Source: Oopsacas minuta (taxonomy: Eukaryota; Animalia; Porifera). Taken from it: a stretch of 64,000 bases of DNA. The position numbers and the translations under genes were made by a program. A model generated the notes under the pieces. That model worked only from the letters and a program-made list of their open reading frames with translations. It had not been told where the DNA came from and made no database searches. How positions within the stretch are numbered: position 1 is the first letter of the stretch; every line of letters begins with the position of its first letter. Location of the stretch: contig JAKMXF010000011.1 of NCBI GenBank assembly GCA_024704765.1, positions 851,557 through 915,556 of the forward strand, written 5' to 3'. Below are positions 4,437 through 15,963 of this stretch, one piece after another.

Positions 4437-6647
4437 TTAACTATCTGTCAAACCTTTCAAAAATTCTAAACACCACTCTGTCCCATACTCAGATTTTGGT
4501 TTCCAGTACTGATAATCTGAGAATGTATTATCAATAACATCAGGGCCTTTTAAGTATGGATAAACATAGTCAACGTATTCGGTCAGGTTTGTGTAGCTGG
4601 ATTGGAAAGAGAGAGCTTGTTGATGACGTAATTGCCCTCTACTGTTGATTATAAATATCAAAGATTTTGGTATACCAATTGCTTCGTATGATGTCACATC
4701 TGTCTGTCTGTTTCCGTAGCCCGCGAAAAATGGATTTGAACCAGGTGGAAAAATACTTTTCACCTCTTCCAAACATCTTATCTTAAATACGTCGGGTTTT
4801 TTCGCGATAACTTCCTGGTGAAAAGCCCCGAAGAGTGACAAAGGCGCAAGTAGAAGTGGACCATCCGGAAGTGAAATATTTCGTTGTTTTATTTTCTGTA
4901 AAAGCGCACGTGTTGGATTGGATTGCCCAATCGCCCTCGCAGATAAATAAATAAATTTATAGCCATTAGCTTCAATTTTACTAAACAAATCCGTTACACC
5001 CTTTTGAGACCAATCCTTTCCTAAAATTGGTAAAATCTGTCCGAGCGCATCCGATTTCGTTATGGTACCATCAATATCCGATATGACAATCTTATCATAA
5101 TAATTCCAAAGGTATAAAGTACAGACAACTCGACATGTACCTTGATACCGAGTGATTACGGAGAGAGAAACCTCATTTGCTCCTTCTTTAAGAGGGAGAC
5201 ATGCCAGCTGTTCAGATGTCAACACATTGGTGATCTTACTGGGTAATAGGAATTCAGTTTGAGAGTCAATTGGAATTGTTTCGTCAATACTGTTTGTTAG
5301 CATTGAGGAATCTTCGATAAATTTCGGAGTTTTCGGCTCGCTACCTATTGAGATTTGATCGGATTTCTTACTCCAGTTGAACCAGGATCTAATACGAGAT
5401 TGTTTTTGCTCTAAATTGAGTTTGACAATGTTCTCTGTTGACAAAGGTTCATTAAAACATATTCTACTCATCAAAATAGGTGCAGCTACTCGCCAGTTAT
5501 AATATTTTCCATTGATACGCACCACTAGATTTGGATCAGATAAGATATCAGTAGAACTTGAAAATTTCTCAAATGATACTAGATATTTGTCAAATAGTTC
5601 AGGCTCTATCGTTTTATCTAAATTTAGACCACCGCATAGAGACATTGCTACAGGACTTTCGCAGTTAGAAAACAAACCAAACGGGTTGCGTAGTGGTGGT
5701 GAAGAATTGGGCGAAACTGTTTGGGAGTTCTCTGGAGATGATCCAAGGTCAGAGCTGATATCAACAGGTTTAGATTGAGGAGGGATATGATTGGGTAATT
5801 CGGGTGTCTGTGTCAAATCAGGCGTACGAGGCAATTCAGGTGTATGTGAGGATTTAGGTGTGTTTGGTGCTATTGCTGTGATATTATTGAGGCTAATAGG
5901 TATATTATGTTGTTCTGGAGATGAAGATAGAGGGATTGGAGTTGGAGAAGTAGATCCAGACAATAATTTCTTCATTTTACCAATAATTCCATCATTGGGT
6001 GGGTCAGTACTCTCATCAACAGCTGACAAATTATTCCCGCAATCAGTAAATTCCAGGTGATCAGCTGAGTTGTGTTTCCATAGCCAAATATTCTCACTTA
6101 ACAAATGCTCATCATTTGATTCATAAATAGGAGCACCTTCTGAAATAGACCTAGTGCGACCAATACTACTTACTGTTGATTGAAAACTTCTTAGAGATGG
6201 TGTACGCAAGTTTCTACATTCAATCTGTGTATCTTCTGGGTATATATCGTCAAATTGGAATAGTTCTTCACCTGTATCTGATTCTATAACAAATATATTA
6301 TCAACTTCATCAAAATTCTTAATGGATTGGTATTCAAATTCGTCATTTGGACTGTTGCATGTGCTAGCACGATCTTCAATACTATTCACTATCATAGCTG
6401 TTCCCCACTCGTTTAAACGTATATTCAAATGATCCATCACTTCACCGTTTACACATAATTCAACCTCTTTTTCACGACTACGTAAAACGCCGAGTTTCCC
6501 GAAATGCGCGTGTATTGGTGAACTTACAAGCGATCCATCTTTCTGTCTTACAACAATGATATCTATTGCTCCTGTTAAATTCGCTCCATTCATATCATTG
6601 TAAAAATCTCTAACAGCTTTGCCAGCCTTGATTAAGTATCTAGTCAT
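4437..6647 (-). CDS. LPIN: Lipin (phosphatidate phosphatase), single exon
   Basis: NLIP domain (GAIDIIVVRQKDGSL...HFGKLGVLRSREK), Lipin_mid (DPNLVVRINGKYYNW), and LNS2 with catalytic DIDGT and LGQIL. The first in-frame ATG is 6647; the track starts at a TTG (6656). Confidence 0.97.
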   Translation of the reverse strand: MTRYLIKAGKAVRDFYNDMNGANLTGAIDIIVVRQKDGSLVSSPIHAHFGKLGVLRSREKEVELCVNGEVMDHLNIRLNEWGTAMIVNSIEDRASTCNSPNDEFEYQSIKNFDEVDNIFVIESDTGEELFQFDDIYPEDTQIECRNLRTPSLRSFQSTVSSIGRTRSISEGAPIYESNDEHLLSENIWLWKHNSADHLEFTDCGNNLSAVDESTDPPNDGIIGKMKKLLSGSTSPTPIPLSSSPEQHNIPISLNNITAIAPNTPKSSHTPELPRTPDLTQTPELPNHIPPQSKPVDISSDLGSSPENSQTVSPNSSPPLRNPFGLFSNCESPVAMSLCGGLNLDKTIEPELFDKYLVSFEKFSSSTDILSDPNLVVRINGKYYNWRVAAPILMSRICFNEPLSTENIVKLNLEQKQSRIRSWFNWSKKSDQISIGSEPKTPKFIEDSSMLTNSIDETIPIDSQTEFLLPSKITNVLTSEQLACLPLKEGANEVSLSVITRYQGTCRVVCTLYLWNYYDKIVISDIDGTITKSDALGQILPILGKDWSQKGVTDLFSKIEANGYKFIYLSARAIGQSNPTRALLQKIKQRNISLPDGPLLLAPLSLFGAFHQEVIAKKPDVFKIRCLEEVKSIFPPGSNPFFAGYGNRQTDVTSYEAIGIPKSLIFIINSRGQLRHQQALSFQSSYTNLTEYVDYVYPYLKGPDVIDNTFSDYQYWKPKSEYGTEWCLEFLKGLTDS

Positions 6648-10000: not shown

Positions 10001-13000
10001 CTCTGATTTAGTTGTCTTACCTTGTGGAGAGAGAAGATGTATCAATTCAGGGCAATTGAATCCATTCACACTCACAGCACTATTTGCATCTGTAACACTA
10101 TCATCATCAGTATGTGAGAACTTCCATATCCTAACTGTCCCATCAGCTGATCCAGTCAGGAAGCAAGGAGGTAAGCAGGGGAGTTTTAAATTAGACGGGT
10201 ATACCTCTGCTGCCCAGATCTGTGACGAATGGAACAGGAAAGTTCGTATTGGCTTATCTTGAATTAATTTCTTACCATTTTCTCGTGCGTTCAGTAGATT
10301 ATAAATGTCCCAGATATAAATACTGTGATTTGAATATGATGATATCAACATTGACTGAGTCTGGAATATTGTTAAACCGAGTGCAGTGGGATGATACCTT
10401 AAGAAGGGGTAGTAATAATAAAATGTAGAAATTTAGTGTGAAAAGCGCGTGAACAAACCTGTTTTCTTCCAGGAACAACTTATCCTTGTCACCTGTCTCG
10501 CTCGACATAGCCAAAGGCACACACGTCACATATTGAAAACATGGAATTTCAAAAATACGAACCAATGCATTGATCCCTCCACAGAAAAAATAATTTCCTA
10601 TAACTGCAATACATCTTGCTTGTCTAATTTGTGTATCAAACCATGAAACAACTTCTCTATCTGAATTCAGTATAAGCATTATCCCTAGTAAAAATGTATT
10701 ATTATGACGTAATATGTAATATATTCGGCCGTAATATAGCTAACCATTAATTAACCATATAAGGTATGTATTGTGTAATCAATTATATATTTAGTAATCT
10801 GCATACTTCACCATAAATTCACATAAGTGTAATGTTAAAAATATCTGATCTGATCAGGGTCAGGAGAGTGGCCAGATAAATGGTATGTATGGGTTTTGAC
10901 CCTGTTTACCCAGTTGATCATTATTGTATAGAGCAAGCATGAGTTTTGCGTTTCTCCAGTGAATAATAATTATGTAAAATGCTAAGAGTTACTATTTCCA
11001 GGAATAAGCTTGCTTACCTCGTTGTGATAAAACATAAGTCTTGGTCAGTCTATCAATGCCTGTAGCTCCGAATTTAGCTTTACTACAACAAACTGCAATA
11101 TAATTTAATGATTGATGTGCTCCTAATACAGCAGCTCTAGAAACGACGGAGTTTACACGTCGTGACCTATGAGATAGTTCAGCATCAAATTGACAGAATC
11201 TAACTGTGCGTAAGCCAACTAATACAAAGAAAGAGCCATCTTCTGATACAGACATGCAGTTAACCTAAATGATGAAACAATGATTATATTCGGCTGATTC
11301 GAATATGTCTTGTTTTCATGACGTCACTGAAAGTGTCAATGGCCAAATATGCCTAATTAGGAGCTCAATCGATGGTGCTTGGATAGAAAAATAGGGCTCC
11401 CTTTACAGGAATTTGGTGAAATGGGCACCTGAAAAAACAAACAATTATCAATTAAACTATCCTCCAATCGAACGATTGAAATAGATATATGTTGTAGTAT
11501 GTATTTTCTGATCATGCCATTTTCCAGTAGAACATACAGGAGATAATTCCCATGTGCTTTCATACACTAGAGTAAGCATAAATGAGATGATGTAATAGTA
11601 ATTAAATATACACCCCAATGAGCGAGAAAGTAGATTTTATTAATGATATGAATAATTACAATTTTTGAAAATGTTTTCGCCTAAAACGAGATTATCTCAC
11701 TCAACTGTTTAATTGGGTATACTTACAAGTCTGTAGAGGTATAAAGAACGAGTGATAGCAGTTTGAATGTACAGTAATTCTATGGTATAATATATTAAAT
11801 AGAATAGGCTAGTTTCAGAATATATACCCTCACAACCACGACACCTTATTCAATTTGCAAAATTTTGTAGCGAAAGATAGCTGAATAATAATATACACTA
11901 AAGATAGGAATGGGATTATACATATTTACATATTCGCTATTATTGCTTGTGATGAAAAGCGCAGTATTATTCTTGCAATTAATGTATTTGTATGCTGTTA
12001 AGAATATGTTAGTTCTATATTTTGACATAATCTTCTTTTAGTTATTCAGGTCATTAAGAAGGCTCTTTTCGAATAAGTTCCGAAATTTCATTTTTCAATT
12101 CCTCTCTCTCCCTGACCAGTTGAGTTCGCAATTTTATCAAGTCACAAATACTAGCGTTATACTTCTTCCTAGCTTTCTTGTTTGAAATCTCATGTTTGTA
12201 TTCCTGGATGCTCGCAATGTATTTCAGTGGAAAGTTTGCTAATTTCATATCACATTTCACTGTAATTGTATTGATTGTACTCAATTTATTGGCGTCAATC
12301 AACAATAAAATGGATTTTGGATCATTCCGATCCTTTATAAGATTGACATCTCTTTTCCAGTTCGCAGTTAGAATACTTTTGATTGATTCTAGCATTGTTT
12401 GATTGTATGAGTCCTCCTTCTCCATTTTCCAGCTGTTTGTTCGTCTGTTTGTTTATTCAAATGATAAAGAAACATTTCTTTTATAGAAGAAGAAGTCTCA
12501 GAATATATATTTTTCCAGAAATATTTTCCAGTTTTTATGAACACATCCTCAAACGTTACGAATTATTGAAACATCCAATTCAAAATTAAATCCCCAAACT
12601 GAATTTCAGTTGTATACATGTACATAAATATAACCGGAGGTGATTATTGATCAATCTACTATGTTATGGAATACATAATATCCATTACAACGAATAAAAT
12701 ATTTGAAAAAGTTAGAGTATCAACAATAATATTGAGTAATCATATCCAAAATGTGTAAATGCCAGCTTTTGTGTATTTTCGCCCATCTGGACAAGCAACA
12801 GGAGTAACCAACTCACAACATTTCTAACAAGTAAAGTTTATCAATAGCAGGAGGATATATAAATGCAAGACTGCTTCAAAATATGTATACATGTATGTAT
12901 TTGTGTACTATGGAAATTGCAGAAAATAATGCAAATATGCTGAGCAAGAATAGCGTTTTATTCTAAACTTTGGACTTCAAGATTCAGCGCTCATTTTAAT

Positions 13001-15963
13001 TTTAAATTGAAATGATTTAATCTCTTCTTTAAGATCCTTCTTATCTTGAATTAACTGGGAACGGATTGCCATAAGATTTTTACAGTCTTTACATATTTTA
13101 TTGTATCTAGGTCTAGCCAAGTTGTTAGACAACACTTTCTTCCAATTCTGGATAGCAGCAATGTATTTTTCATCGAATGAGGCCTTTAACATATCTTGTC
13201 GTACTTCTCGTGTGTCTTTCTTGGATAATTTGACCTCATCAACTAGGCTTAGTATTGAATTATAATCTTCAGGTTTATCTATATGGAGAAAGTCTTCTAA
13301 CCAAAAAGATTTTAAGATATACTCAATAGATTTCAATTGTTTATGTGTATATTGTACTTCCATTTTCTCGTAAAGTTACAAAAATAAGTGAGCTTTTTAT
13401 ACATGTAGTTTCGAATTTTCCATTCTTTCTTTCTGTTCATCTCCAAAGAAAAGTTCACACGCTCAAGTAATATCAGTATATTTTGAGGGAATAATATACC
13501 GATAATTCAAGTTATGAATAATCAATAATTGAGAATTGTAAGAGATATTCTACGTAAGTCTGTGATTCAACTCACATTTAGTTATAGGAAATTTATCCCC
13601 TTTAGAATCCCAACACATTGTCGTCATAATAGACTGTTATGAATCAATTTTGATAGTCCCATTGAATAAATTCTATATTCTCATTTATTTAATGAAAAGA
13701 AACACGAAATTTATTATTAAGATGAACTTGGTATAGCTATTAGGCAATAATATTATTAACAAAAGAATGAAATTCCAATCTCTTGTTGCTGTTGAACAAC
13801 AAGTTAATTACCAAAATAAACCGATAATTTTCTCAATATATGTATTTGATCACATCTCCTGTTAGAAACATCCACAAGTCTGAGAGCTACAATATTGAGT
13901 ACCTTACTATAGGAAATTAACGCGAATGCTTCAATTCGCGTTAATTTCCTGCAATTTATGCTATTTAGCAAATTTTTACAATGGATGGGCAAATCCCAAT
14001 TTACATGTTTTCCGATGCGTGACTGGTTTGAGAGGATACCATGTCTATCAAGTGGACTGGAAACCTATTTTGGGACAAGACATTGAATAATTTCTTAATA
14101 TTTATTCGCATAAAATAGTGTATATACAAATGTTCTCCCTCTCAATCGCGTTAATTTCATGTAATTGAAAATGTTCCGCTCCAATTCGCGTTATATTAAG
14201 GTAAGTTTAAACATAAGTTTTGACATCATGAGCTCTACATCTTAGATGGATTCTACAAGTATCCTTTGATCGTTAGAAACCGCAGAAATATGAAAGAAGC
14301 CATTTTGAGTTAAATGTACGGGAATAACTTGGATGCCACAAAATTTTGAGAAAAGAGTAGAATACAAAATTATATTCTAACATGGGATTGAGTAATGTAA
14401 ATGTAATGTACATAATTATTTAATGCAACCAACAAATCAATGATATAATCCAATGCAATCTGATACCTCAATTCAATAATTAGTATTCATCGATTAGCAG
14501 TTATAATTATGACAAAATAGTTGCAATGAAACGGAAATGTTATTCTCCATTTTGATAGGGTTGTATCCCATTATGATAGGGTTGTATCCCATTTTGATAG
14601 GGTTGTATCCCATTTTGATAGGGTTGTATCCCATTTTGATAGGGTTGTATCCTATTTTGATAGCTTTGTTCCTCATAAAATATTATTTCCTGAAACAATA
14701 ATTTTTGTTCCTTCAGTAATCTACACTGTTCTATCATCAATTGACGAATGTCTCTTTCCAGCTGTTTATGATTCTTCCTTGCTTTGTCTTGATTCACTTT
14801 TGTTCTCATATTTCTTAATCTTGCAGAAAATTCCTCAGTAAGATCGACTCGGGTACATAAAGCTCTAAATTCAGGCCTTGTGAGGCTGACAACCTTTTCA
14901 TCATCAAATATTTCATCAGATTGCAATTGTAACTGATTGTAATTCGGCTTTAAAACTTTAGAAATAATTTCATAGTTTACATTAACAGACATTTTCTTTT
15001 GTATTATGTTGTACAGTCAGTTAAAGCTGTGTAGCATATTTATAGAGTATTAAAGCGGTATATTTAAACGTAATTAAGTGATATGCAAGCTAATAGAATG
15101 TAATACAAATGACATATGAAGTTATTCACTGCAAAGTAGCAATGAACTGAAAACAATAATACAATACAAGGATATTAAACCATATTTCTAAATTATGACA
15201 ACCCTCATTGCATTTATATTTATTCAAATTGTATATTACTGACCTTAAAAGTTTTGTTATTAGCTCCTATCTTGCTCTGAGATCTCCAACACCATACAAA
15301 CACACTCTTATCATGCTCAGCTCCAACTGAAATAACATAATTCTGATCAGGATGGAATTTAACATAATCAATAGCATGTGTATGTCCTGGTAGGGAGACT
15401 AGCTCCCGTAGACTTGAGTACTCCCACACTCTGACTAATGGTTTATGTCCTTGTTCTCCAGTAACTATATATCTCCCATCAGGTGACCAAGATAATGATA
15501 TTATAGCCTAGAATGATATACGAGCAAAATAAAATCATAGAATAATCTTTACATGAATATTATTACAAATATTCGCAAAATTCCCCAAGGGTTTATTAGA
15601 GGGAATTTGCGATAACCACTGTAATGTATATTTAACCTTTCTGGTAGCATTCATAAGATAACTCTGTGTATCTCTCTTCACATCATACAGTACTACTACA
15701 CACCCAGCTGGATAGGCTAATACTCCATCAGCTGAGCAACACATAGCTGCTACTGTAGGGTTAGTAACACCCAGTACTTTGTGTAGCTGTGGTGTAGTAT
15801 TGGTAGTAGGTAGATTGGGTGCGATTTGTACAGGATTGCTTGTGTTTATGTTATTGTTGTTGTTGGTAATAGTGTTAATGTTTTCTTTGGAAGAAACTAA
15901 TGATATGAAGCTAGGAGGACGGTTGAGCTTGTTAACTCGTTTAGTTGGATCTTTCTGAGACAT
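7088..15963 (-). CDS. WDR62/MAPKBP1-like WD40 scaffold, 8 exons: 15637-15963, 15244-15507, 11018-11264, 10459-10684, 10021-10397, 8850-9754, 8478-8793, 7088-8268 (about 1280 aa)
   Basis: LHKVLGVT...LAYPAGCVVVLYD, LSWSPDGRYIVTGEQGHKPLVRVW, FLTGSADGTVRIW and GHSEMILSVRFSQDGRYFVSVGGDGCVFVWKL match the WDR62/MAPKBP1 family. All introns are GT-AG with consistent phases (3843 nt in total). The acceptors of exons 6 and 8 have alternatives. Confidence 0.88.
8303..8455. mobile_element. MITE family A, copy 2, in the last WDR62-like intron
   Basis: TA|CAGACAACTTCCGTTATACCGAAG ... TTGGATATAATGGGAGTTGACTG|TA; imperfect 23-bp TIRs with TA on both sides. Confidence 0.85.
12054..12425 (-). CDS. Short divergent Maf/CNC-like bZIP protein C (123 aa), nested in WDR62-like intron 2
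   Basis: Clear paralog of 12977-13363 (SIKSIL..W..D...I....D..SIL.L.D..KLS...T..V..DM..A.F..KYIA.IQ..K...SN..AR..YN), with a C-terminal Leu heptad zipper. TATAAAAG lies at 12478-12485 on the minus strand. Confidence 0.65.
   Translation of the reverse strand: MEKEDSYNQTMLESIKSILTANWKRDVNLIKDRNDPKSILLLIDANKLSTINTITVKCDMKLANFPLKYIASIQEYKHEISNKKARKKYNASICDLIKLRTQLVREREELKNEISELIRKEPS
12977..13363 (-). CDS. Short divergent Maf/CNC-like bZIP protein B (128 aa), nested in WDR62-like intron 2
   Basis: FDEKYIAAIQNWKKVLSNNLAR aligns ungapped to CNC-type LTEEQLALIRDIRRRGKNKVAA, followed by an I/L/L/L/F heptad. Minus-strand TATAAAAAG lies at 13393-13401, and AATAAA follows shortly after the stop. Confidence 0.65.
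   Translation of the reverse strand: MEVQYTHKQLKSIEYILKSFWLEDFLHIDKPEDYNSILSLVDEVKLSKKDTREVRQDMLKASFDEKYIAAIQNWKKVLSNNLARPRYNKICKDCKNLMAIRSQLIQDKKDLKEEIKSFQFKIKMSAES
14540..14992 (-). CDS. Short divergent Maf/CNC-like bZIP protein A (150 aa) with a C-terminal YQNGIQP repeat tail, nested in WDR62-like intron 2
   Basis: IFDDEKVVSLTRPEFRALCTRVDLTEEFSARLRNMR resembles the Maf/CNC extended homology region. LERDIRQLMIEQCRLLKEQKLL forms a zipper. Minus-strand TATAAATA lies at 15037-15044. Confidence 0.65.
   Translation of the reverse strand: MSVNVNYEIISKVLKPNYNQLQLQSDEIFDDEKVVSLTRPEFRALCTRVDLTEEFSARLRNMRTKVNQDKARKNHKQLERDIRQLMIEQCRLLKEQKLLFQEIIFYEEQSYQNRIQPYQNGIQPYQNGIQPYQNGIQPYHNGIQPYQNGE
14547..14663. 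repeat. 21-bp coding tandem repeat, about 5.5 copies (CCATTTTGATAGGGTTGTATC)
   Basis: Directly visible; encodes (YQNGIQP)n on the minus strand. Confidence 0.97.

Follow-up and report, generated by a model that had tools for sequence, protein, structure and literature searches.

Three conserved mini CNC-like bZIP genes nested on the same strand within a WDR62/MAPKBP1 intron of the glass sponge Oopsacas minuta

The window analyzed here is a 64,000-nt stretch of contig JAKMXF010000011.1 of the glass sponge Oopsacas minuta, and all coordinates given below are window positions. A WDR62/MAPKBP1 gene on the minus strand of this window contains an intron of 3,979 nt (11265 to 15243, minus strand) that encloses three further genes, designated A, B, and C. 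The host exons on the 5' side (15244 to 15506) and on the 3' side (11017 to 11264) of the intron, both on the minus strand, were recognized by host open reading frame (ORF) pieces at 15220 to 15429 and 10992 to 11255, which match PF24780 (MABP1/WDR62 first WD40 domain), as well as by spliced contigs of an RNA-like run, X4. In this run, contig 29 covers 15242 to 15506 at a depth of 669 and is spliced on both sides, and contigs 25 and 29, which both support the 3' exon, are joined at 10683>11017 and 11262>15242. The latter joint (cut +2), seen in run X4 only, skips 3,979 nt, and the ends of the intron read CT..AC on the plus strand, which corresponds to GT..AG on the minus strand. The neighboring host introns are only 333 and 129 nt long.

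Inside the large intron we found three intronless ORFs, which, together with their TATA boxes, all lie on the minus strand, the strand of the host: gene A (150 aa; 14540 to 14992), gene B (128 aa; 12977 to 13363), and gene C (123 aa; 12054 to 12425). Each was identified as a mini CNC-like bZIP gene from its ORF and a family HMM, supplemented by an AF2 model for A, by hhalign and an AF2 model for B, and by ortholog conservation for C. A positional scan of the sequence placed a TATA box (TATAWA) 52 nt upstream of the ATG of A (15038 to 15044), 38 nt upstream of that of B (13395 to 13401), and 60 nt upstream of that of C (12479 to 12485). A, B, and C are same-strand nested genes within one WDR62/MAPKBP1 intron, and the original prediction, which had read three intronless ORFs of these lengths, each with its own TATA box, on the host strand of an intron of about 4 kb, was confirmed in all of these parts. 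It had also taken two of the ORFs for obvious paralogs; these are B and C, whose proteins share 42% identity (E 6e-22), and the relation between A and B is weak (24% identity, E 7e-5). Besides, the YQNGIQP C-terminal tail of A is encoded by about six copies of a 21-nt tandem repeat (14547 to 14672, minus strand), and the ortholog alignment revealed that this tail is missing from the A orthologs.

The same intron harbors, between genes A and B and outside the genes, a MITE-like dispersed repeat of about 300 bp (13895 to 14193, unstranded), which shows depth spikes in four of four sequencing runs and matches, in most or a large part of its length, about 20 other genomic places at 81 to 96% identity. 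A 17-nt perfect palindrome was located at 13911 to 13950. Repeat analysis of the region detected no terminal repeats flanking genes A, B, and C.

We compared the locus among O. minuta and four other glass-sponge-like assemblies. At loci L087, L088, and L089-L092, genes A, B, and C recur between the corresponding two WDR62 exons with unchanged order and strand, whereas L094 holds only the B and C types in the same WDR62 intron; flanking genes common to these loci are PDE-GAF, AP-5 sigma, and Lipin. The A orthologs come first within the intron of L087, L088, and L089, and B orthologs were present in four assemblies. Since host-exon identity is 76 to 90% and synonymous divergence (dS) is saturated, these loci do not belong to the same species. 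The nested genes themselves showed 38 to 64% identity to their orthologs, against the 76 to 90% of the host exon, and gene C was the best conserved of the three (46 to 62%). At the DNA level, the only stretch outside the host exons that could be aligned with L089 was 12156 to 12523 (71%), of which about 100 nt precede the ATG of C.

It might be argued that the trio is nonfunctional, consisting of chance ORFs, decaying duplicates, or mobile-element pieces, and that any RNA from the region is host pre-mRNA or lariat. The trio is indeed missing from public annotation, the intron also contains a MITE-like repeat, and the RNA evidence consists of contigs only. Nevertheless, we regard this reading as highly improbable and largely refuted. 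At a GC content of about 33%, approximately 7% of codons are expected to be stops, which gives an open frame of 123 codons a probability of about 1e-4 per start, and chance ORFs were rejected because three homologous same-strand frames stay open in five assemblies, although dS is saturated between assemblies even in the host exon. A transposon-borne cluster was likewise rejected, given the lack of flanking terminal repeats and the conserved synteny. In addition, all 15 nested ORFs examined have TATAWA at a distance of 32 to 62 nt ahead of the ATG, as do 46 of 73 ORFs of the wider family, compared with 6.6% of random positions.

The pattern of substitutions also speaks against decay. Codon-position identity between B and C was 0.63 at the second position and 0.53 at the first, and it fell to a random level (0.32) at the third. 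Because dS is saturated, dN/dS could not be computed for B versus C or for most species pairs, and it was usable for the L089-L094 pair only; in this closest pair, the dN/dS of B and C together was 0.40 (bootstrap 95% interval, 0.27 to 0.62), with none of 500 resamples reaching 1. This indicates purifying selection, and the neutral evolution that the original prediction had named as a possible refutation was not seen. The proteins A, B, and C were not found in public protein collections, and neither A nor B retrieved any match in word-indexed protein searches, not even the query itself. A, B, and C are real protein-coding genes, each with its own TATA-box promoter.

Transcription of the region was examined with run X4, an RNA-like run of uncertain kind whose strand-blind contigs give neither strand nor transcript ends. 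The contigs cover the intron interior (11290 to 15091) at 11290 to 13929, 14032 to 14603, and 14623 to 15091 with a depth of 47 to 62, and the WDR62 host exons have a depth of about 670, equal on both sides of the intron. Coverage was zero over the first 150 nt (15092 to 15241) and the last 27 nt (11263 to 11289) of the intron, as well as in the 333-nt and 129-nt host introns. Host pre-mRNA, lariat, or DNA contamination would cover the intron ends and the short introns, all of which were bare, and these sources of RNA were therefore rejected. X4 shows just three host joints, and none splices host exons to the nested ORFs. The covered interior with bare intron ends and short introns argues for independent transcription of the region of genes A, B, and C, either as three mRNAs or as one read-through RNA. 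The lack of transcription, which the original prediction would also have taken as a refutation, was thus not seen either.

The original prediction had proposed a check of the three proteins against the bZIP_Maf profile (PF03131), and direct matches failed for all three. A Pfam scan of A, B, and C gave no bZIP match (PF00170, PF07716, or PF03131) up to an E value of 10, so that none reached the PF03131 gathering threshold of 22 bits, and none of 12 B/C orthologs produced a significant match, the sole bZIP row being one bZIP_2 match with an E value of 0.28. The CNC/Maf-type ancestry itself was nevertheless upheld by way of paralog intermediates. An HMM built from 27 O. minuta paralogs, with the window sequences excluded, matched A at 1.3e-12, B at 1e-7, and C at 2.3e-7, and comparison by hhalign of a profile of B/C orthologs with 26 canonical O. 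minuta paralogs gave a probability of 97.9% (E 4.4e-13), the profile alignment also covering the accessory helical region N terminal to the basic region. Several of the O. minuta paralogs used pass the PF03131 cutoff. Furthermore, a family profile including the trio matched the solved structures of Nrf2 (7x5e_B, 6e-16), BACH1 (8e-13), and MafB (1e-10), with SKN-1 and NF-E2 also among its best matches. When the profile was restricted to B/C, the best PDB match was again Nrf2 (E 0.005), and a trio-only profile gave no significant PDB match (MafB, E 0.4 to 0.7). These profile comparisons, which link the proteins to the family over their full length, show homology of the trio to bona fide CNC/Maf-type bZIPs, and as there is no direct Pfam match, this descent is visible only through intermediate paralogs.

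A six-frame search of the O. minuta genome yielded 92 PF03131 matches, about 80 of them above the cutoff, and the trio loci were not among the 92. The genome thus holds at least 80 loci for mini CNC/Maf-type bZIPs, including about 40 Maf-like minis and, on contig C88, four larger Maf genes. Within the family, the trio groups with the CNC-like half (N-x2-A-A-type paralogs) and not with the Maf-type half (R-x-Y). The trio is neither isolated nor species specific: it is one old subfamily of the CNC-like half within a large expansion of the mini bZIP_Maf type, comprising about 80 to 90 loci. A, B, and C are both old and fast evolving.

Our literature search turned up no report of expanded bZIPs in hexactinellids. 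The main text of the A. vastus genome paper presents one osculum-upregulated bZIP and a bZIP tree and no expansion, and the O. minuta genome paper emphasizes transcription-factor loss and limits its survey to bHLH and homeobox genes (PMC10280926). Published counts are low, with one or two CNC genes per invertebrate genome and 17 bZIPs in Amphimedon (PMC6213907), and 446 bZIPs over 20 holozoan genomes (PMC4736632). Against these counts, the presence of at least 80 bZIP_Maf-type loci in the 61-Mb genome of O. minuta stands out sharply, as an unreported expansion.

The original prediction had further noted a changed DNA-contact motif and a shortened distance from the basic region to the zipper, and both were verified. 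The motif, which can be read directly from the translations, is N-x2-A-R-x2-Y-N in B (N-N-L-A-R-P-R-Y-N) and C (N-K-K-A-R-K-K-Y-N) and Q-x2-A-R-x-N-H-K in A (stub R-x2-R-x-K-x-N-Q-D-K-A-R), compared with the canonical N-x2-AA-x2-[CS]-R. The deletion, scored as a gap of 8 to 11 columns against 26 or 27 canonical O. minuta paralogs, amounts to 8 residues in A and B and 11 in C. In consequence, 10 residues lie between the basic-region Asn and the first zipper Leu in A and B, and still fewer in C, instead of 18 in canonical paralogs. None of the three proteins carries the bZIP signature N-x7-R with A-A and C/S at positions 4, 5, and 8 or the fixed bZIP spacing N-x7-R-x9-L (18 residues). The terminal invariant Arg is lost in A, B, and C, and the canonical Asn is replaced by Ser in two B/C orthologs.

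All three proteins nonetheless retain a five-heptad zipper and the accessory helices, with a short basic stub left between them, and an N-terminal I-L-x3-W motif lies in the accessory (CNC/extended-homology) domain of the trio. The zipper "d" positions are L-L-L-L-Y in A, I-L-L-L-F in B, and (Y)-L-L-L-L in C, and in the AF2 models of A and B the leucine heptads lie on one continuous helix with the basic region. Among CNC-like members, K or R occupies zipper position a2 in 21 of 21 and position a3 in 20 of 21, and B and C have K or R at both as well, whereas A has Q at both positions and hydrophobic "e" positions. A may therefore pair in a mode different from that of B and C.

Structure prediction, proposed as a check, returned Maf-like models of A and B with modest scores. 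The AF2 model of A (pLDDT 83) has a single long helix at residues 53 to 118 and that of B (pLDDT 96.8) one at residues 65 to 127, both helices with pLDDT above 90, and short helices are packed ahead of the long helix. With the model of A, the top 13 Foldseek rows were MafA, MafB, Nrf2, MafG, and NF-E2, although the best E value was just 0.17; with that of B, Foldseek gave no significant match, MafG ranking fourth (E 2.9). A wide VIA search with B placed MafA first (2.7 Å rmsd over 86 residues; B 41 to 128) at a Z score of 6.4, which barely exceeds the value of about 6.0 for unrelated coiled coils. The suggested pairing with Maf/CNC proteins passed weakly by complex prediction. B (41 to 128) with a Maf-like mini (L021) reached a median score of 0.52, against 0.00 for the best control, a value that by the tool's own grading is weak support, more often wrong than right unless pairing is already likely. 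Contacts agreed to at least 85% among the three runs, with a partner pLDDT of at least 75. This score may reflect memory of solved CNC-Maf complexes, and it does not single out the true partner.

Taken with moderate confidence, the best explanation is that A, B, and C are nested mini CNC-like genes whose products modulate or inhibit the bZIP network as zipper partners. In the manner of CNC proteins, the products would use the zipper to dimerize with other members of the family, the Maf-like minis being the most plausible partners. By its geometry, the truncated arm presumably could not enter the major groove in the canonical way, so that dimers containing A, B, or C would be poor DNA binders or would need different half-sites, and the trio would act as microprotein-like modulators or inhibitors of the expanded network. 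The zipper and its family code are retained and the basic region is truncated and remodeled, a combination that may resemble microProtein-type regulators, yet the remodeled segment is itself conserved. We infer that the trio are most likely zipper partners unable to read DNA canonically.

This conservation bears on a second reading, in which the trio are still sequence-specific DNA binders with a new recognition mode, for example, for a shorter or differently spaced site, the remodeled [LI]-S-[NS]-x2-[AS]-R-x-[KR]-Y-[NR] segment reading DNA differently together with the CNC accessory helices. Five residues (S79, R84, Y87, K75, and Q72 in B numbering) are identical across 12 B/C-type sequences of five assemblies, a sign of constraint on that segment, although the canonical Asn varies, and the stub is still rich in K/R. 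Since the changed motif is itself conserved, a new positive function agrees with it no less well than mere loss would. Within the CNC clade, SKN-1 offers a precedent for noncanonical modes, as this CNC relative contacts DNA by its CNC domain and basic region without a zipper. On the other hand, the invariant bZIP Arg is now Asn or Arg-shifted residues, the Asn has become Ser in the two orthologs mentioned above, and a Pro lies inside the segment of B-type proteins; besides, the loss of 8 of the 18 residues from Asn to the first Leu would remove the fork segment by which the helices diverge into the groove. We consider a new recognition mode unlikely.

A third reading, somewhat more doubtful still, is that the trio are conserved small coiled-coil proteins outside transcription, with a nonnuclear protein-protein role and a bZIP ancestry that is merely historical. 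The lack of a significant Pfam bZIP match in 12 of 12 B/C orthologs would agree with this, as would the fast evolution relative to the host exon and a constraint pattern unlike that of bZIP DNA contacts. However, the full family architecture and the basic stub are kept, the family zipper code retained in B and C suggests continued interplay within the family, and the pairing prediction for B with a Maf-like mini, weak as it is, points the same way.

The trio can be compared with several related systems. CNC-bZIPs (Nrf2/NFE2L2, NF-E2 p45, BACH1/2, Drosophila Cnc, and C. elegans SKN-1) have the same helical CNC domain before the basic region, followed by the long helix. Nrf2 pairs with sMaf (structure 7x5e), such CNC-sMaf heterodimers binding MARE/ARE-type DNA sites, and the zippers of B and C have charged "a" positions too, as expected of obligate heterodimerizers. 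In contrast to these CNC-bZIPs, the trio proteins are only 123 to 150 aa long, have no transactivation, Neh2/KEAP1, or BTB parts, remain under the PF03131 cutoff with their shortened and altered (A-A-x2-[CS]-R to A-R-x2-Y-N) basic region, and belong to a family of dozens of loci. The trio resembles the small Mafs (MafF/G/K) in size (about 150 aa) and in having accessory helices, a basic region, and a zipper without an activation domain, and the Maf DNA-binding domains of MafA and MafB were the top structural rows for the A and B models; it differs in its place in the CNC-like half, the lack of the Maf-specific basic-region Tyr and Gly, and the truncated basic region. CHOP/DDIT3, A-ZIP designs, Id proteins, and plant LITTLE ZIPPER microProteins are natural or engineered inhibitors of bZIP or HLH proteins, and by analogy the trio may be likened to them as small derivatives of a transcription-factor family that keep the dimerization module and would have a defective or missing DNA-reading segment. 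Unlike them, the trio keeps an accessory CNC domain and a conserved, remodeled basic stub and forms an ancient syntenic set of three genes instead of a single gene, and its inhibitory action is putative.

That conserved, selected, and transcribed genes are missing from protein collections indicates that the O. minuta annotation under-calls small nested genes, and other sponge annotations probably do so as well. The trio provides a natural experiment on a bZIP deprived of the fork and the invariant Arg while its accessory domain and zipper remain, and its members can be tested as candidate endogenous modulators of bZIPs in an animal lineage that branched off early. Within a single intron, three promoters, and presumably as many 3' ends, have persisted on the host strand over deep divergence, and the equal depth of the host exons across this intron makes the locus a clean case for the coexistence of splicing and internal 3' processing. 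WDR62 is a mitotic-spindle and JNK-scaffold gene, and the conserved nesting could couple expression of the trio to transcription of this host. The expansion also alters the view of gene regulation in hexactinellids. Wnt and many of the classic developmental transcription factors have reportedly been lost in glass sponges. It is possible, though we advance this only tentatively, that these sponges instead assembled about 90 intronless, TATA-driven mini CNC/Maf bZIPs into a very large combinatorial network, in which ancient, remodeled syntenic subfamilies, such as the nested trio, might serve as dedicated negative or specificity-switching subunits.

The outsized WDR62/MAPKBP1 intron that the original prediction had described, with ORFs nested on the strand of its host, was confirmed by spliced joints, ORF translation, and domain searches. 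In the O. minuta genome assembly (61.46 Mb in 365 contigs; PMC10280926), contigs of sequencing run X4 that match the window (contig C11, 851557-915556) splice from 11262 to 15242, skipping 3,979 nt with GT..AG borders on the minus strand, and the adjoining host introns, also spliced in X4, are 333 and 129 nt long. By Pfam scan, the flanking ORF pieces on both sides of the trio belong to the first WD40 domain of MABP1/WDR62 (PF24780). Translation of the intron gave three minus-strand ORFs: gene A (14540-14992; 150 aa), gene B (12977-13363; 128 aa), and gene C (12054-12425; 123 aa). Each is preceded, as had been claimed, by a TATA box (TATAWA 52, 38, and 60 nt 5' of the ATG of A, B, and C, respectively), and B and C are the two obvious paralogs anticipated (42% identity; E value, 6e-22), with A being distant kin of B (24% identity; E value, 7e-5). 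The C terminus of A consists of a 21-nt tandem repeat (14547-14672; about six copies, 90 to 100% identical) encoding YQNGIQP; this repeat is missing from A-type orthologs and is thus a recent, species-specific, in-frame expansion. The intron also contains a dispersed MITE-like repeat (13895-14193; about 300 bp) that includes a perfect 17-nt palindrome (13911-13927/13934-13950). Roughly 20 other places in the genome match most or a large part of it at 81 to 96% identity, its depth spikes in all four sequencing runs (X1 to X4), and it interrupts contig assemblies between A and B.

The assignment of these proteins to the CNC/Maf-type bZIPs failed in a direct scan, in which A, B, and C singly matched no bZIP model of Pfam at E values up to 10, but was borne out by family profiles. 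A trio-only profile gave nothing significant against the PDB. A matches weak paralogs elsewhere in the O. minuta genome, several of which exceed the cutoff of PF03131 (bZIP_Maf), and 76 family ORFs were extracted from this genome for profile tests. An HMM of 27 longer paralogs, from which the window sequences were excluded, matched A, B, and C end to end (E values of 1.3e-12, 1e-7, and 2.3e-7, respectively), and hhalign of the B/C-type ortholog profile with 26 canonical paralogs gave a probability of 97.9% (E value, 4.4e-13; 107 columns). The family profile including the trio retrieved Nrf2 (6e-16), BACH1 (8e-13), and MafB (1e-10) from the PDB, as well as SKN-1, NF-E2 p45, and MafG, and the B/C-only profile placed Nrf2 at the top (E value, 0.005), followed by FosB and c-Fos. 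These profile comparisons support the descent of A, B, and C from CNC-type bZIPs. The predicted structures agree with this homology, but weakly. In the AlphaFold2 model of A (pLDDT, 83), short helices precede one that spans residues 53 to 118, and the 13 top Foldseek rows for it were all MafA, MafB, Nrf2, MafG, or NF-E2, although the best E value was only 0.17. The model of B (pLDDT, 96.8; pTM, 0.76) shows a helix spanning residues 65 to 127 besides five short ones; it had no significant Foldseek match, and in an exhaustive VIA-align search MafA ranked first among 48,161 chains (Z score, 6.4; 86 residues, 2.7 Å), with unrelated coiled coils at about 6.0. Thus, the homology rests on the profile evidence, with which the models are consistent without being decisive.

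A six-frame PF03131 search of the 61-Mb O. minuta genome yielded 92 bZIP_Maf-type matches, of which about 80 exceed the cutoff. Most are intronless uninterrupted frames of 100 to 200 aa, and many are clustered in tandem or head to head (for example, C88:838965-846304, C309:403023-406583, C362:1497-4711, C22:302854-312867, and C341:125064-136035). The structural and evolutionary part of the original interpretation is supported, and the picture that emerges is larger than had been thought: the trio is not isolated but part of an expansion, so far unreported, of about 80 to 90 mini CNC/Maf bZIPs. Alignment and tree divided the family into two halves. Members of the CNC-like half carry R-R-K-x2-N-x2-A-A-x2-[SC]-R and an N-terminal I-L-x2-N-W/F-L-x-L-I-D extension, and the Maf-like half comprises minis of about 105 to 115 aa with R-R-x-x-K-x-[KR]-x-Y, together with four larger Maf genes on contig C88. 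The trio was placed in the CNC-like half within a seven-member group (SH-aLRT, 93), in which B and C are sisters (98). Two multiexon family members, LOD99_6 and LOD99_16234 (P0001 and P0012; 313 and 325 aa), have a highly conserved basic region (R-E-L-R-R-K-A-M-N-K-K-A-A-E-E-C-R) and close orthologs among P0002 to P0015 in many assemblies and one transcriptome. They resemble the ancestral, canonical CNC/NFE2 genes of hexactinellids, and the minis may have arisen from such genes.

Relative to the canonical paralogs, the spacing between basic region and zipper is shorter, in accordance with the original prediction: 8 residues are missing in A and B and 11 in C, and the basic-region Asn lies 10 residues from the first zipper Leu in A and B, versus 18 in the canonical paralogs. 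The deletion falls in the C-terminal half of the basic region and the hinge; 7-residue hinge gaps also appear in the family alignment for the members on contig C309. The DNA-contact motif is likewise changed, with loss of the invariant Arg, to N-x2-A-R-x2-Y-N in B and C and Q-x2-A-R-x-N-H-K in A. The zipper keeps the register of the canonical paralogs, with five heptads ending in Tyr or Phe. Among CNC-like members, Lys or Arg occupies the second zipper "a" position in 21 of 21 and the third in 20 of 21; B and C keep these residues, and A has Gln at both.

We found that the trio is conserved in position beyond O. minuta. A trio profile searched against 1.84 billion representative proteins gave 12 matches of 114 to 151 aa, nine at E values of 1e-17 or better and all from ENA or Logan assemblies. 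In four other assemblies, the corresponding WDR62 intron, bounded by the same two exons, holds nested ORFs on the host strand in the order A-B-C: ERZ25766962 (locus L087; 124, 137, and 132 aa), ERZ20067936 (L088; 136, 151, 124, and 129 aa in an intron of about 9.4 kb, the C type being duplicated), the BUSC20-1 metagenomes/SRR11455650 (L089 to L092; 106, 129, and 133 aa), and ERZ25069837 (L094; B and C types of 138 and 125 aa). PDE-GAF, AP-5 sigma, and Lipin are neighbors common to all of them and O. minuta. At the first position of the L094 intron (L094:5891-8867), no intact A-type ORF was seen, only a called gene of 52 aa (6011-6169), and the A type may have been lost or broken in that species. 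The two C-type copies of ERZ20067936 (L088:6506-15914, ptg000032l; 124 and 129 aa) are 59% identical, and another paralog of the B/C type (P0025; 135 aa) lies outside WDR62 on a separate contig (L093:8001-8408); the B/C subfamily can thus duplicate and disperse. The L088 intron also holds a minus-strand ORF of 135 aa.

Ortholog identity (24 to 37% for A, 38 to 60% for B, and 34 to 64% for C) is far below that of the adjacent host exon (76 to 90%), indicating that the nested genes evolve fast. In a DNA alignment of the O. minuta intron with L089, only gene C and about 100 nt upstream align. Synonymous sites are saturated, in the host exon too, and every nested frame is still open; among the codon positions, the second is the most conserved, and identity at the third is at the level expected by chance. 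For the closest pair, L089-L094, dN/dS of B and C combined was 0.40 (bootstrap 95% interval, 0.27 to 0.62). These results support the view that the trio are old, syntenic, selected nested genes.

TATAWA was present 32 to 62 nt 5' of the ATG in all 15 nested ORFs across the five assemblies, and genome-wide a TATA box lies 25 to 70 nt 5' of the ATG in 46 of 73 family ORFs (63%), versus 6.6% of random positions. Expression was assessed from contigs of the four runs, which come from one sample. X1 to X3 gave long unspliced contigs that behave like DNA, and X4 was taken as RNA because of three spliced host joints at a depth of about 670. Unstranded X4 contigs cover the intron interior at 11290-13929, 14032-14603, and 14623-15091 (depth, 47 to 62), with breaks at the dispersed and the tandem repeat and coverage extending about 50 nt upstream of the TATA box of A. 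Coverage is zero at 15092-15241 and 11263-11289 and in both short introns (bin values were reproduced arithmetically), although gaps in contig data prove nothing. Unspliced pre-mRNA, lariat, or contaminating DNA would cover the intron ends and short introns. Transcription with both its start and its end within the intron, as one RNA or three, therefore best accounts for the coverage of the interior. Host exon depth in X4 is even across the intron (669 upstream versus 680 downstream), which gives no visible sign that the nested units truncate or attenuate the host mRNA.

Consecutive basic "a" residues in a zipper disfavor homodimers; together with the known pairing of Nrf2 with small Maf proteins, this suggests heterodimerization of B and C. 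We infer that A, B, and C would dimerize through a heterodimer-type zipper. With neither the fork nor the invariant Arg, the arm of these proteins would be unable to track the major groove as in Nrf2-MafG or Maf-DNA complexes, and they might in this way modulate partner bZIPs or block them. A complex predicted for B (residues 41 to 128) with the Maf-like mini L021 scored 0.52 (best control, 0.00), was graded weak, and may echo solved CNC-Maf complexes; contact agreement among the three runs was at least 85%, with a partner pLDDT of at least 75. Twelve residues (W21, S36, L38, M58, F63, I68, Q72, K75, S79, R84, Y87, and L111) are invariant in 12 B/C-type sequences, and the canonical basic-region Asn is outside this set, implying that the remodeled basic stub is itself constrained. 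The main rival to the modulation or blocking of partners is that the conserved S-x4-R-x2-Y stub and the CNC domain form a new DNA-recognition mode.

Jindrich and Degnan inferred at least 12 bZIPs in the animal ancestor from 446 bZIPs across 20 holozoan genomes, with little change since (PMC4736632), and invertebrates have one or two CNC-type genes per species according to Zhu et al., who reported 17 bZIPs for Amphimedon (PMC6213907). The O. minuta genome paper treats only bHLH and homeobox factors and stresses losses, mentioning neither bZIPs nor an expansion (PMC10280926); the Aphrocallistes vastus paper refers to one bZIP with increased expression in the osculum. Our literature search found no report of the bZIP expansion or of the nested trio, and none of 15 billion public proteins is identical to A, B, or C. 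Thus, the trio are unannotated nested genes, yet old, syntenic, selected, and transcribed.
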